In this document: one piece after another, positions 2,641-17,722 of the stretch
How positions within the stretch are numbered: position 1 is the first letter of the stretch
Layout: each line of letters opens with the position of its first letter
Assembly: GCA_024626585.2 (NCBI GenBank)
Contig: JANKJI020000001.1
Span: 6,361,615 to 6,383,560, forward strand
Length of the DNA: 21,946 nt
Reading direction: 5' to 3'
Source: Ginkgo biloba
Taxonomy: Eukaryota > Plantae > Ginkgophyta
Notes under the pieces: generated by a model
The model's database searches: none
What the model saw: only the letters and a program-made list of their open reading frames with translations
Told to the model about the DNA's origin: nothing
Program-made: the position numbers and the translations under genes

Positions 2641-4099
2641 CCTAACTTAATCAATTGTTATTTTAATTGAAGTGTTTCCCTTTTATAAAGGAAATATATT
2701 TTTACATTGCCCATTTTAATGTCAAATTAGAGACTTCAACCTTCTCTAAGTGAAGGTTTATTATTAATCTTTAGTTTCCATGTTTAGAACCAACACATTG
2801 CTTATTAATGAATAATAGTAACTAACTAATTCAACAAATAATACAATGATAAATCTTAATAAATGTTGACCTAGTTTGTAAATTTTATTTTATCCAAGCA
2901 TTATAGCTTTGTTCCTTACATCACTAGCACATATATTATTTCCTATATTCCCTTTTTGAAACAAAAATAAGGGCATGTTGTATCATAGACATTTCTCCAA
3001 ATATTTTAACACATTAGTAAAACTAAATACTATTATGAAATCACTTTACAATCTATAATTCAATTTGTTTGTTTACAATAATTTGAATTTACATACAAAG
3101 GATAATGGTATAGTAAACTCCATAAATTTGACGTAGTTGATAGTTTTCTATAATAATATTATAAGGAAGAGTAGAATCATGTCTTATTAGTAGTTGATTT
3201 AAAGCTCAAATAATACCTATACATACTTAGCACAAAAATAAATTTAAGAAATTTATAATAATATAGTATAAGGATGGGTAGAATCCTTAGTTATCATGAA
3301 TATATTAAAATACATATCAAAGCCAATAACAACAACTTCTAAGAAAACATGAAAGCATAAGGCCTAATATTATAAACAAATAAAGAAAGTAACAAACATA
3401 TGACGCATTAGCTTCTACCAATATTATAAATAAATTAATTTTCAAATAATTTTAGAGTATTTAAAATTTATATAAGTTAAAAAAATTTCAAAGTTTTACT
3501 TAATAGGGAAAAAACTATTGACACTTATATTATCAAATATAAAAAAATTTTACTTGTCATAAATGACAAATGGAAACAAACTTATGAATTTATTTTGAAG
3601 GCTAATTTAATAATTAACATTCTATGACAAGTGAAATGTCCTTTAAAGGGCATTACATGTTGAAAAATTGATCCTTACTTCTTATACTTTTAATTGCATG
3701 GATATAGAAATGCATTGAACAATATCTCTCTATCTTACCTCCATTGTTGTTTTCCAATGAGAACGTAGCCAATAATAATGCAACACAACAACAAGGCTTC
3801 AGTTTCATCTCAATGCTTCTTTGAAAAATACAAAATTACAATTTTAAATATCATTTAAAGGAGGATGCCAAAATTATATAATATGCAATTTCTCAAACTT
3901 TTTAAAATAAAAATCAATCTGTAATAAGTTTATCCCCTTGGTTTCATTATATTCCCACCAAGTTATTGGTCTAGTATTAATGTAATTCCTTTTTACATAC
4001 TTATAGATGCATACTATGAGCACACTATTATTAACATTTTTATTTTCTTAAATATAAATATATTTTATGTGTAGGGAGGCTATAAAGTCTATATTACAT

Positions 4100-4352
4100 T
4101 TTTATTGCCCTTTTTTGCACCCTTGTATTTTCCTTTTCCATTTATGTAAATATATCCTCTATTTCTTATCTATCATTGAGCTTTGTACCCTTACAACTAT
4201 TTATTGGATCTCATGAGTGAATCCATTTATTTTCACTCCACACTCCTTATCTTATGCATCATTGTTATTAAATTCTATGGTTATTTAATATGTTCTCCTC
4301 ATTACACCATGTTATCTTACCAAATAGGATTTTTATATTCTTTTTACCACAT
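4100..4352 (+). repeat. Copy of dispersed LTR-like repeat family (segment A)
   Basis: Aligns by eye with 7315-7565. Shared anchors: tccttatcttatg (4244-4256 vs 7457-7469), ctatggttat, cctcattaYaccatg. Confidence 0.7.
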
Positions 4353-4452
4353 NNNNNNNNNNNNNNNNNNNNNNNNNNNNNNNNNNNNNNNNNNNNNNNN
4401 NNNNNNNNNNNNNNNNNNNNNNNNNNNNNNNNNNNNNNNNNNNNNNNNNNNN

Positions 4453-8291: not shown

Positions 8292-9318
8292 TCCATGATG
8301 CATCAAATGATAAATCAATATTTCATGTGTATAATAGGGATATTCTTCCATGTGAGATTTTTGCTAAGGTGGGAATATTCCCCCATGCACTTGATGTATT
8401 TAAAGAGGGAAATCTCATGAATATTAGTGAGACTCGCCCCATCACCATTTCCATAACTAACACTCTTGAAGAAATTTTTATTGGAGCCGAATATACTCCC
8501 CATGAGGAAATTCAATTTAAATCTCTCTGTCAAGAATACCATGACATCTTTGCTTGGTCTTATAATGAATTGCTAGGGATGGATCCCAATTTTATCTCTC
8601 ACCATATAGATACCTATTCCAAATTTATAATTCACCAAAAATAATGTCCCATAAAACCTAAATTAGATGAAGTTATTAAGAAATAAGTTAAAAAACTTCT
8701 TGATGATATGTTCCTTTTCCCTATCACATATATTAAATGGATAGCTAACATTGTGCCCATGATAAAGAAAAATAGATCCATCAAAATCGATGTTAATCTT
8801 ATATATCTCAATAGCGCCTCTCCTAAATATAACCATCCAACACCATTCATCAATGATATTATAGATTCCATGGTTGGGAACGAATTTATTTCCTTAATGG
8901 ATGGATTTTCAAGCTACAATCAAATTCTTATATTTGATCAAGATCATATCAAGACTGTATCTACTACTCCTTGGGGTACTTTCACCTATCATGTTATGCC
9001 TTTTTTATTAATAAACTTTGGTGCCCCTTATCAAAATGCTATGATAAGGTATTTTAATGATATGTTGAACATGCATGCCAATGCTTACCTTGATAATTTG
9101 AATGTTAAATATTTTAAATGTCAATATTATTTTGATGGTTTACATATTATATTTGAACATTATCATATGCACTAAATTAGGCTTAATCCATATAAGTGAA
9201 TTTTGGGTGTACATTCTTTATGCCTTTTAGGCTATATTATTTATGACCAGGGAATACATATAAATTCCACCAAAATTATGTCTATTGTGGATATGGATCA
9301 CCTAAAAATTTGAAGCAA
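8292..9318 (+). pseudogene. Ty3/gypsy (Tat-like) reverse transcriptase remnant
   Basis: One frame with stops: EGNLMNISETRPI...DIFAWSYNELLGMDP...WIANIVPMIKKN...MDGFSSYNQI...TPWGTFTYHVMPF...YLDN (YxDD with D>N, 9086-9097)...IRLNPYK*...LLGYII. Confidence 0.95.
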
Positions 9319-13559: not shown

Positions 13560-13895
13560 ATCCCATCACGTACCCATTCTAAGGTGCAAGAAAAAATAAA
13601 ACGAATACCAACCATGATGATGTAATCTTGTGACGAGTCATCATCATTACATGACTACGAGTCATTACGAGTCATCATCATTAATCTTGTGTAGTCATAA
13701 AGAATACCAACTTCAATGATACAATATTATGACCAATCATATGTAACCCACCACTTTTTCACTCTAAGACACAAGGAAAAATAAAATAATCTAATTGCAA
13801 TGATGCAATATTGTGACCAGTTGTATTCAACCTATCATTTACACACTTTAATGCGTAAGAAAAATAGAAAGGATATTATCTTTGATGGTGTCACT
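13560..13895 (+). repeat. About 84-bp degenerate tandem repeat in the retrotransposon 3' UTR
   Basis: Y-aagRaaaata motif at about 13587, 13772 and 13856, each in a unit with tgatgYaatattRtgacca-like sequence. Confidence 0.65.
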
Positions 13896-13944
13896 TTACA
13901 CCTGTTCATGATTAGAAGAAGAATTTAAATAAATGATTCTTTCA

Positions 13945-14000
13945 TAATCATCAGAATTTCAACCCAGGAAATACCATAAGGGTTGGAAGTCTAATGATTA
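13945..14000. other. 21-bp inverted repeat / hairpin with 14-nt loop
   Basis: taatcatcagaatttcaaccc (13945-13965) vs gggttggaagtctaatgatta (13980-14000): 18 of 21 positions complementary. Confidence 0.85.
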
Positions 14001-14332
14001 AGAGTAAAAGTATAGGCGAGCAACAATTATNNNNNNNNNNNNNNNNNNNNNNNNNNNNNNNNNNNNNNNNNNNNNNNNNNNNNNNNNNNNNNNNNNNNNN
14101 NNNNNNNNNNNNNNNNNNNNNNNNTAAAGATTATAAAATTCTTTATCTTCTCATCATCCGAACACATTTCACTCTTTATGAGCTCATCAGCGGATAAAAC
14201 TTGCTTGAGTGATTAAGAGTAAAAGTATAGGTGAGTAGAAATTATATCGATAACCACACAATAATGAATATTCTAAAGTAACAAGAATAAAAAATAAACA
14301 ACAACGAATAAGAATGAATAAAAAACTTTTGA
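13995..14332 (-). repeat. Tandem repeat (period about 215 nt) carrying a hammerhead ribozyme; Penelope pLTR or retrozyme-like
   Basis: 36-bp block tgattaagagtaaaagtataggYgagYaNNaattat at 13995-14030 and 14210-14245 (32 of 36 identical), separated by a 94-N gap. The minus strand is T-rich. Confidence 0.6.
14154..14197 (-). ncRNA. Type I hammerhead ribozyme with minimal stem III, CpG-decayed
   Basis: Minus-strand RNA reads UUAUCCG-CUGAUGA-GCUC-AUAAA-GAGU-GAAA-UGUG-UU/CGGAUGA. It has an intact CUGAUGA and GAAA core, a 7-bp stem I, a 4-bp stem II and a GUH triplet. Predicted cut between 14161 and 14160. Confidence 0.85.
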
Positions 14333-14468
14333 NNNNNNNNNNNNNNNNNNNNNNNNNNNNNNNNNNNNNNNNNNNNNNNNNNNNNNNNNNNNNNNNNNNN
14401 NNNNNNNNNNNNNNNNNNNNNNNNNNNNNNNNCTCTCTTTCTAACTGCACTGCTGCACATTCACTTCC

Positions 14469-14489
14469 ATATATATATATATATATATA
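14469..14489. repeat. (AT)10 microsatellite
   Basis: Read directly. Confidence 0.95.
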
Positions 14490-15087
14490 CATACGGGAGA
14501 AAGCCAGAGTTAACCCTATCGATATATCAGACTTGCCACAATAATACCACTTTATGTCTAACGGAATCGTGAGCATTTCCCCCCAAGGGAAGAGGGTAAA
14601 GAAGATCATCGCCAAACCACGCGCATTTCCCTCCGCCAGACGTGTAGTTGGACAAAATATTTGAAGCGCGCCGTGGGTTGATTATACCCTTTTTTTTTGG
14701 GTAAGTGATGGTAACATTCCACCAAGTTATTATTTTCGCCAGCTTTGAGTATGCGGCTCGTAGACTGACGGTGCGCTTTCGTTCTAGATGTTATGGTAAT
14801 TATCTGACTATCTAAACACGTTTTTGTCGTCTTCTTAGGAAAACTCAAGTTGGTAGTCACCACCAACATGATCGTAATCTCGTATCCTTGGAAAATTGGT
14901 AGGGTAGGTCCCCCATTGTCTTTCCCTTTTGAAGAACATACGCACACGTGGTGCCAATCACATTTGCACACAAGGGAGCAACATGTCAAATGGAGTCTTG
15001 TAAGCATGTGCTTGTCTCATTATTAGTCTAGTACAAAGGATGATAAGGATTCCCAACTCAGAGTCCTCCATTGAACGTGTTGCCGAC

Positions 15088-16175: not shown

Positions 16176-17722
16176 GACCTTAAGTAGGCCCCTATTTCTA
16201 CTTTTATCCTTATGCCAATAAAATTTACCAAAGATTTCATCTTATACATTTCATTTTTTGATATGGCTATAAGCAAGGTCCTTGGCTCTTGCATTGAATA
16301 TGTCATATATTATGCAAGCAAATTCTTAGTTGGTTACAAATTGTACTATCCTGATATCGATAGATAGTGCCTCGCAATTGCTAATGCAACTACAAGTCCA
16401 AGGCATTATGTGCTCCATAACCATACTTAGGTTATGCTTCCATCTAATTCTCTAAAATATCTCTTATACTAGACAATCTTATCAAGATGATTTGGCCTCT
16501 AGACAATTCTCCTTTAATAGTTTGAGTTTGAATTTGTACATCCCAAAGCTAAGAAGGGCATGAGCTTAGCTGAAATCCTTATTGACTCCCTCCTCCACCT
16601 TAAGCTCATATCCCAATGGTCGACACTTTTCTTAGATGATACCTTACTTCTAATTTTAGACGAAGACGAATAGTTTGGAGATATCACTCGGCAATTTAGA
16701 GATTTGACCTATGCTCTATATCTTGAAAAAGCCCAACAACACTTCACATCTTAACTCTTGGCTATATCATCCTAGATGACACCTTGCACAAGAGGTCCAT
16801 AGATGGAGTTATATGTCATTGTGTTGCACAAGATAACGCAAAAATCATCCTTAATAAGTGTCATTTTGGTTTGTGTGGAGGTCATTTCTCCATATTTAGT
16901 ATAACATCTAAGATCATTAGAGGTAGTTATTATTAGCCTATACTTGTCAAAGATTGTCATGAAGTTATCAAGTATNNNNNNNNNNNNNNNNNNNNNNNNN
17001 NNNNNNNNCAAATAACATGCACCCCCGACTCCACTTCATCCTATAATTATTATAGATCCATTTGAAAAATGGGACATTGATTTTTTTTGGACCATTTGAA
17101 CCACTTGTGGGGACTCTATATTAGTAAATAATTATTATAGTTGACTATTTTACTATGTTGGTTGAGGTTATGTTAGTAAAGAGGGCTAATGGTGAAATAA
17201 CCACGATGTTCATATTCAACCCAATCATCACAATATTTAATACACCACTAGATATTGTTTTAGACCATGGAGCTCACTTTATTAATGAGTTGATGGAGGA
17301 ATTATTACATAAACCTGGGATCGATCACTCTAAGACTTCATATAATTACCCTCAAACCAACAAACTAGTTGAATCATTTAATAAGATGTTAGAGATGATT
17401 CTTCAATGTATAATTGATGAAAATCATCAAGACTAGGATATTAAAATATAGTCGACATTATGGTTCTATAGAACAACTACCAAAGTTACTACTAGTGTCA
17501 TACCTTTCCCACTCGTATCTTGGAGAGAAGTTATTCTTCCAACTAAAGTGCAAAAACAAAAGTAAGTACAAAAGTATGAAAGACAAATTGAAAATAAGAT
17601 GGCTTGGACCATATGTTTTGGAAAAGCTCTAAGAAAATGGATCAACATAATTGTCCAAGTCAATAGGAGAGTTAGTGCCAAGACGTGTTAATGATGATTG
17701 TCTAAAGCTTTTCAAAGAATGA
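16176..17722 (+). pseudogene. Ty3/gypsy (Tat-like) RNase H and integrase remnant
   Basis: FILYIS..DMAISKVL...VIYYASK.LVGY...CLAI...RHYVL...LKYLL...KAKKGMSLAEIL (RH), then CHFGLCGGHFS...YY*PILVKDCHE (zinc finger), PFEKWDIDF, IVLDHGAHF, YPQTNKLVESFNK (DDE residues retained), RWLGPYVL, VNDDCLKLF. Confidence 0.93.

Follow-up and report, generated by a model that had tools for sequence, protein, structure and literature searches.

What kind of element leaves a 36-bp block on either side of an assembly gap in a plant genome, with a hammerhead ribozyme motif joined to one of the two copies? The stretch that raises this question comprises 21,946 nt of the Ginkgo biloba contig JANKJI020000001.1 (positions 6,361,615 to 6,383,560, forward strand); we refer to the whole of it as the window, and number positions from its first letter. 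A preliminary description of the interval 13995-14432 had proposed that the ribozyme sits in a tandem array with a period of about 215 nt, and that the contents of the gaps within it can be predicted. We now consider it probable (roughly 0.7) that a short array has decayed here, its units arranged head to tail and belonging to a dispersed, non-coding repeat that carries a type I hammerhead and resembles the non-LTR (long terminal repeat) retrozymes or derives from Penelope. The window array probably comprised two units. The repeat has a defined unit, forms tandem junctions, has spread to unrelated loci, carries a ribozyme motif and lacks coding capacity.

The repeat unit and its copies

The window is a fragmented, A/T-rich scaffold (~29% G+C) with 16 runs of N in 22 kb. 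Eleven of these 16 gaps are exactly 100 N, which is the convention for gaps of undefined size, and the other five are sized (28-105 N). At 14125-14332 lies a contig of 208 nt, flanked on its left by a sized gap of 94 N (14031-14124) and on its right by a conventional gap of 100 N with undefined size (14333-14432). The block at 13995-14030, which directly adjoins the 94-N gap, recurs at 14210-14245 with 32/36 positions identical, the first 22 nt all matching (BLAST E 1e-8), and this pair is the sole significant internal match of the region around the array. The start-to-start spacing is 215 nt as scaffolded, and the recurrence across the sized gap that had been described is thereby borne out, as is the presence of 87 nt (14246-14332) between the second block and the 100-N gap, which they directly adjoin. 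The preliminary description had also allowed for a haplotype or assembly-overlap artefact. This we reject, because the two blocks are 11% apart, a divergence too high for two alleles or for one sequence assembled twice, and because the two blocks have unrelated flanks on the side away from the gap (to the left on the plus strand), which leaves no contig-end overlap.

Gap-free copies of the unit are available for comparison. A scan of metagenome contigs with an exact 25-nt ribozyme string gave a single match, a contig of 6721 nt (Ga0181472_100476, JGI sample 3300013864; hereafter L001). As L001 carries three terpene-synthase exons on its plus strand (943-2135; Pfam E 2.5e-11; C-terminal domain, the first with DDxxD), for which the best PDB match is taxadiene synthase, a gymnosperm enzyme, its sequence identifies it as plant nuclear DNA. 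Downstream of this gene, ~640 nt past the last exon, lie two arrays of the repeat: a solo unit on the minus strand (unit a, 3005-2776) and a head-to-tail dimer on the plus strand (units b and c, 3929-4353), which has a period of 209 nt. The L001 units are 81-88% identical to the window copy, and fall in the same range among themselves; copies overall are 12-19% apart, with a divergence of 17% between the neighbouring units b and c. The window and L001 have these units in common and nothing else. Since the flanks of all three arrays are unrelated, the arrays arose by separate insertions.

Read in the ribozyme sense, the gap-free unit consists of a short leader, the hammerhead, a spacer that ends in AATCTTT, 5 nt, the 87-nt segment and the 36-nt block; it is 209-213 nt long and has ~28% G+C (27-30%). 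Both L001 arrays begin with a leader of ~13-20 nt followed by the hammerhead, and both stop only a few bases past the block. On its minus strand, the 208-nt contig of the window presents the same parts in another order, namely the A/T-rich 87-nt segment (14246-14332), which stands upstream of the block, then block copy 2 (14210-14245), and then the hammerhead with its spacer (14125-14209). The hammerhead and spacer are 88.6% and 86.7% identical to two L001 stretches (profile hidden Markov model [HMM] E 1e-27), and the 87-nt segment together with block 2 (14213-14328) is 86-88% identical to L001 (profile HMM E 4e-31). Relative to the gap-free unit, the contig is circularly permuted and therefore holds a block-to-hammerhead tandem junction, at which block copy 2 is joined directly to the hammerhead as unit b is joined to unit c on L001. 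It follows that this genome contains head-to-tail arrays, whatever the true location of the contig, and with the 209-nt period of the gap-free dimer this sustains the proposal of a tandem array of about 215 nt.

The same comparison yields expectations for both gaps. In the alignment with the L001 units, five columns are missing between the two ends of the window contig, from which a full unit of ~213 nt and a content of 5 + 87 = 92 nt between 14125 and 14030 would follow. The three L001 units together predict ~5 nt together with a homolog of the 87-nt segment for the sized gap at 14031-14124, 82-92 nt in total as against the 94 N scaffolded, and the 87-nt segment belonging to the last unit most likely lies in this gap. 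That it contains a homolog of 14246-14332 had been predicted beforehand; unit order on L001 and the agreement in length both speak for this indirectly. To the right, the 5' start of the window array may lie in the gap at 14333-14432, to judge from the arrays on L001, and this gap probably conceals the first hammerhead. Should the window array begin as the L001 arrays do, for which the odds seem to us somewhat favourable, then ~105-115 nt comprising leader, hammerhead, spacer and 5 nt would be found in or beyond this gap; alternatively, a 5'-truncated window array may start inside a unit. That the content of assembly gaps can be predicted from family structure is a practical outcome of the comparison.

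At the opposite end, block copy 1 (13995-14030, minus strand) is the last unit segment and forms the 3' end of the array in the ribozyme sense, and both L001 arrays end at the matching position of the unit. Homology to the family ends at ~13988: the family profile HMM matches 14031-13988 (E 1e-7), and none of it extends past this point. A decayed third unit from 13994 downwards is not supported, with a local alignment p of 0.07-0.10 and a profile that is silent beyond 13988. On the ribozyme strand, 41 nt past the end of block 1, there is a further CTGATGA...GAAA string (13940-13954, minus strand) without a helix II, which could be due to chance or could stem from a much older unit.

The hammerhead motif

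The ribozyme motif occupies 14154-14197 on the minus strand. Its helix I is open and 7 bp long, with 14197-14191 pairing with 14160-14154. The first core string, CUGAUGA, lies at 14190-14184, and is followed by a 4-bp helix II with the 5-nt loop AUAAA (14183-14171), by the second core string, GAAA (14170-14167), and by a helix III in which one A-U pair encloses a loop of 4 nt; cleavage is predicted after the U at 14161. The conserved core CUGANGA...GAAA...UH stands in the correct order here (14190-14161), and likewise in L001 units a and b. With helix I open and helices II and III closed, the topology is that of a type I hammerhead, as it is in the sub-threshold alignment to the Rfam model HH9. 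A type I descriptor matched once in the window against 0.023 matches expected from 1000 shuffles (p ~0.017 per window), and it matched L001 units a and b at homologous places.

The core is intact in three of the four copies, namely the window copy and L001 units a and b. Only natural copies were compared. Across the four, standard pairs fill 95.8% of the pair cells, as against 31-47% when the partners are slid, and helix I is kept through base pairs that differ among the copies. In unit a, helix I is lengthened to 8 bp, since 4 nt are duplicated (CGGA/TGGA) where its 3' strand begins (L001 2933-2941, minus strand). The loop of helix III reads TGTG in the window, CACA in units a and b, and TGCG in unit c, which is the pattern that a CGCG loop undergoing CpG decay would be expected to show.

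Several results weigh against reading the array as a retrozyme-like hammerhead repeat. No match in the window reaches an Rfam gathering score; the best is to Hammerhead_HH9 (RF02275), because its core and helix II string are nearly the same as those of the window ribozyme, and the two differ to the extent that the score is 13.8 bits (E 7.3) against a gathering score of 52. Unit a attains 20.2 bits against the 48.5 required for Rfam Hammerhead_3. Covariation is lacking, with no pair changed on both sides among the four copies, and conservation is no higher in the hammerhead part (84-92% identical) than in the rest of the unit (83-90%). In the window ribozyme, a G-U pair replaces the usual G10.1-C11.1, U rather than C occupies the cleavage position, and loop III is no longer a Watson-Crick palindrome; in unit c, TTGATAA and AAAA replace both core strings. 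Folding of the unit RNA is no better than that of shuffled sequences (z +0.72 and -0.74). The family is represented by four units in all, three of them on a single metagenome contig, and the tandem structure at this exact locus is deduced from scaffolding and homology. That the window array stops right after block 1 is a further qualification of the preliminary interpretation.

Selection on the ribozyme is rejected given the lack of covariation and a hammerhead that is conserved no better than the remaining unit, and the comparison with shuffles lends no support to a rod-like or strongly folded unit RNA. The copies are old, neutrally decaying, CpG-decayed relics, and those examined look dead. 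Among other contigs, a scan with the 19-nt core returned three bacterial matches in genome contigs, which have neither a following GAAA nor any other similarity and which we dismiss as chance 19-mers, and zero matches in viral contigs. A 47-aa stop-free frame that runs across the unit has no relative among 1.84 billion representatives.

Relationship to known elements and alternative explanations

Non-LTR retrozymes consist of low-GC, non-coding units of 150-450 bp in tandem, every unit having a type I hammerhead, and are present at dispersed loci in monomeric, dimeric and multimeric form (PMC7229834; bioRxiv 10.64898/2026.07.22.740005). Their hammerheads have a helix I of ~6 bp, a helix II of 4 bp, and a helix III of 1-2 bp closed by a small palindromic loop, through which cleavage in dimeric form is favoured; these elements are found mostly in animals, where they are linked to Penelope-like elements (PLEs) (PMC7229834, PMC4209133, 10.64898/2026.07.22.740005). 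The window family is like these metazoan repeats (Cervera and de la Pena 2020, PMC7229834; Li et al. 2026, 10.64898/2026.07.22.740005) in being a non-coding tandem repeat of low G+C (27-30%) within the 150-450 bp range, without LTR or open reading frame (ORF), and in having one type I hammerhead per unit, with a helix I of 6-7 bp, a helix II of 4 bp, and a helix III of 1 bp plus tetraloop. Its units stand head to tail, the second hammerhead of the L001 dimer being decayed. It is also like them in its dispersal, as its three arrays share the unit alone, and in its occurrence as both monomer and dimer on L001. Unlike theirs, its host is a gymnosperm-type plant, and the copies are decayed; and whereas retrozyme circles are highly self-paired according to the literature, the unit RNA here is not predicted to be so.

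In plants, the hammerheads described are of type III and occur in LTR retrozymes (PMC7761336, PMC4918200), where LTRs of ~350 bp flank 600-1000 nt with a primer-binding site (PBS) and a polypurine tract (PPT), and G+C exceeds 55% (PMC4918200). The window family is comparable with these (Cervera et al. 2016, PMC4918200) as a non-autonomous plant repeat whose hammerheads could potentially release circular RNA. It departs from them in its type I hammerhead with an open helix I, its units of ~210 nt, its G+C of 28% and its lack of LTRs: no long terminal repeats were found at the units in the window or on L001, PBS and PPT not having been searched for.

The known exception among plants is a canonical type I hammerhead in the pseudo-LTRs (pLTRs) of endonuclease-free PLEs of Selaginella (PMC4209133). 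The main rival at the level of the family accordingly concerns truncated Penelope-like tails: the units may be the pLTR or 3' tail of strongly 5'-truncated autonomous PLEs, rather than an independent retrozyme-like family. Inserted PLEs are truncated at the 5' end, occur in partial tandems and next to inverted copies, and have hammerheads close to the 3' end (PMC8557442). In common with the hammerheads of pLTRs (PMC4209133, PMC8557442), those of the window family are of canonical type I in a plant genome, and show partial tandem and inverted arrangement, the solo unit and the dimer of L001 standing head to head, 923 nt apart. Some PLEs, moreover, favour (TA)n targets (PMC8557442), and a (TA)n microsatellite (14466-14490) is found next to the window array, on the 5' side in the ribozyme sense and separated from the right-hand gap by ~34 nt. 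We nonetheless think this origin unlikely, albeit less so than the other alternatives, since the coding remnants that it implies are missing. Stop-free segments of at least 60 aa gave no Pfam match to a reverse transcriptase (RT) or GIY-YIG domain in the 21.9-kb window, where gaps limit the test, or in the 6.7-kb L001, and no other long ORF is present around the arrays of either; the sole RT relic in the window is Ty3/gypsy-like. Further, both L001 arrays start at one position of the unit and not at variable truncation points, and the full period is just ~210 nt, as opposed to pLTRs that flank a coding body of several kb. Endonuclease-free PLEs also use reverse-complement telomeric repeats next to their hammerheads, and a search for telomeric repeats adjoining the window ribozyme found none. 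On L001 the plant telomere repeat TTTAGGG does occur, as a tandem pair (3336-3349) between the head-to-head arrays and 345-590 nt from them. The preliminary description had noted no Penelope RT or GIY-YIG ORF and had taken the copy to be non-autonomous or truncated. The absence of these ORFs, and with it a non-autonomous copy, is upheld for the window, and the same absence is found on L001.

At the level of the locus, the main rival is a misplaced repeat contig, that is, a scaffolding artefact in which the 208-nt contig belongs to a paralogous array elsewhere in a repeat-rich genome and the locus itself contains a solo unit or the block alone. Fragmentation of the scaffold, with 16 gaps in 22 kb and further contigs of 212 and 326 nt, leaves room for such an error, and in a dispersed family read pairs from paralogs could mimic the apparent distance. 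Three points make it improbable, slightly more so than truncated PLEs: the predicted missing 92 nt fit the sized gap of 94 N; block 1 lies at the exact end of its contig, where the unit should continue; and the 208-nt contig carries the block-to-hammerhead junction wherever it is placed. Finally, an ordinary local duplication or minisatellite with a hammerhead-like string by chance would suit the sub-threshold Rfam scores, the A/T-rich DNA of low complexity and the absence of covariation in four copies, yet is very improbable given that chance would produce the full motif, helix I of 7 bp and helix II of 4 bp included, 0.023 times per window, that the motif recurs at the homologous place in 3/4 copies with helix I kept via different base pairs, and that the arrays lie at unrelated loci.

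Possible mobilisation and the surrounding sequence

The anatomy of the decayed head-to-tail array that we favour corresponds to the genomic form of a non-LTR retrozyme or of a Penelope-derived hammerhead repeat. Were it to have behaved as its better-known counterparts do, a multimeric transcript would have run through the array and been cut at each hammerhead, the 1-bp helix III being such that it would work best as a dimer of neighbouring ribozymes. The resulting unit-length RNA would then have been ligated into a circle, and an RT supplied in trans may have copied this circle, or a multimer, into short tandem DNA that was inserted elsewhere. Transcription, cleavage, circles and mobilising enzyme are all postulated here by analogy with known families. 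The ends of the insertions bear on the template, as they fall near the block-hammerhead junction, ~60 nt from the predicted cleavage site, and the solo unit also spans this site. Array ends that lie away from the cleavage site argue that the template was not a cleaved linear monomer, and such permuted ends are a small clue to a circular or multimeric one. The leader can be aligned weakly with the tail of the block, which would be a terminal redundancy of the arrays, and we regard this as tentative.

More speculatively, gymnosperms may once have had, or may still have, a non-LTR retrozyme lineage of their own (~210 nt, type I hammerhead), mobilised via circular or multimeric RNA by endonuclease-free PLEs, a proposal that we put forward as a possibility and rate well below the reading of the array itself. 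If it holds, a class placed mostly in animals would be extended to seed plants, and small circular RNAs might still arise from better-preserved copies at other places in the genome. Our literature search, in which coverage was incomplete, turned up no description of tandem repeats with type I hammerheads from gymnosperms, and a type I tandem family of ~210 nt in a gymnosperm-type genome would give a plant system for asking which reverse transcriptase moves such repeats. If that genome also contains PLE relics, the family would carry the co-occurrence of non-LTR retrozymes and PLEs, which has been reported from animals, beyond that group.

Immediately left of the array, the interval 13560-13870 contains a degenerate local repeat that is unrelated to the hammerhead unit, with blocks of 42 nt and 40 nt present in three copies each. 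These copies are 62-75% identical, at spacings of 84-185 nt, and an exact 17-nt repeat occurs at 13633 and 13667. A 133-aa ORF beside a gap has no match on record in a protein look-up. Farther away, a 162-aa stop-free frame at 8687-9172 (plus strand) matches the Ty3/gypsy reverse transcriptase 4ol8 in a PDB search (E 1e-12), its only Pfam match being a spurious weak one to ABC_membrane_2; its sequence marks it as a decayed relic of an LTR-retrotransposon RT, Ty3/gypsy-like and the only RT relic in the window. At 17128-17433 (plus strand) there is weak similarity to an integrase core (rve; E 0.007, under the Pfam cut-off), possibly part of the same or of another LTR-retrotransposon relic.
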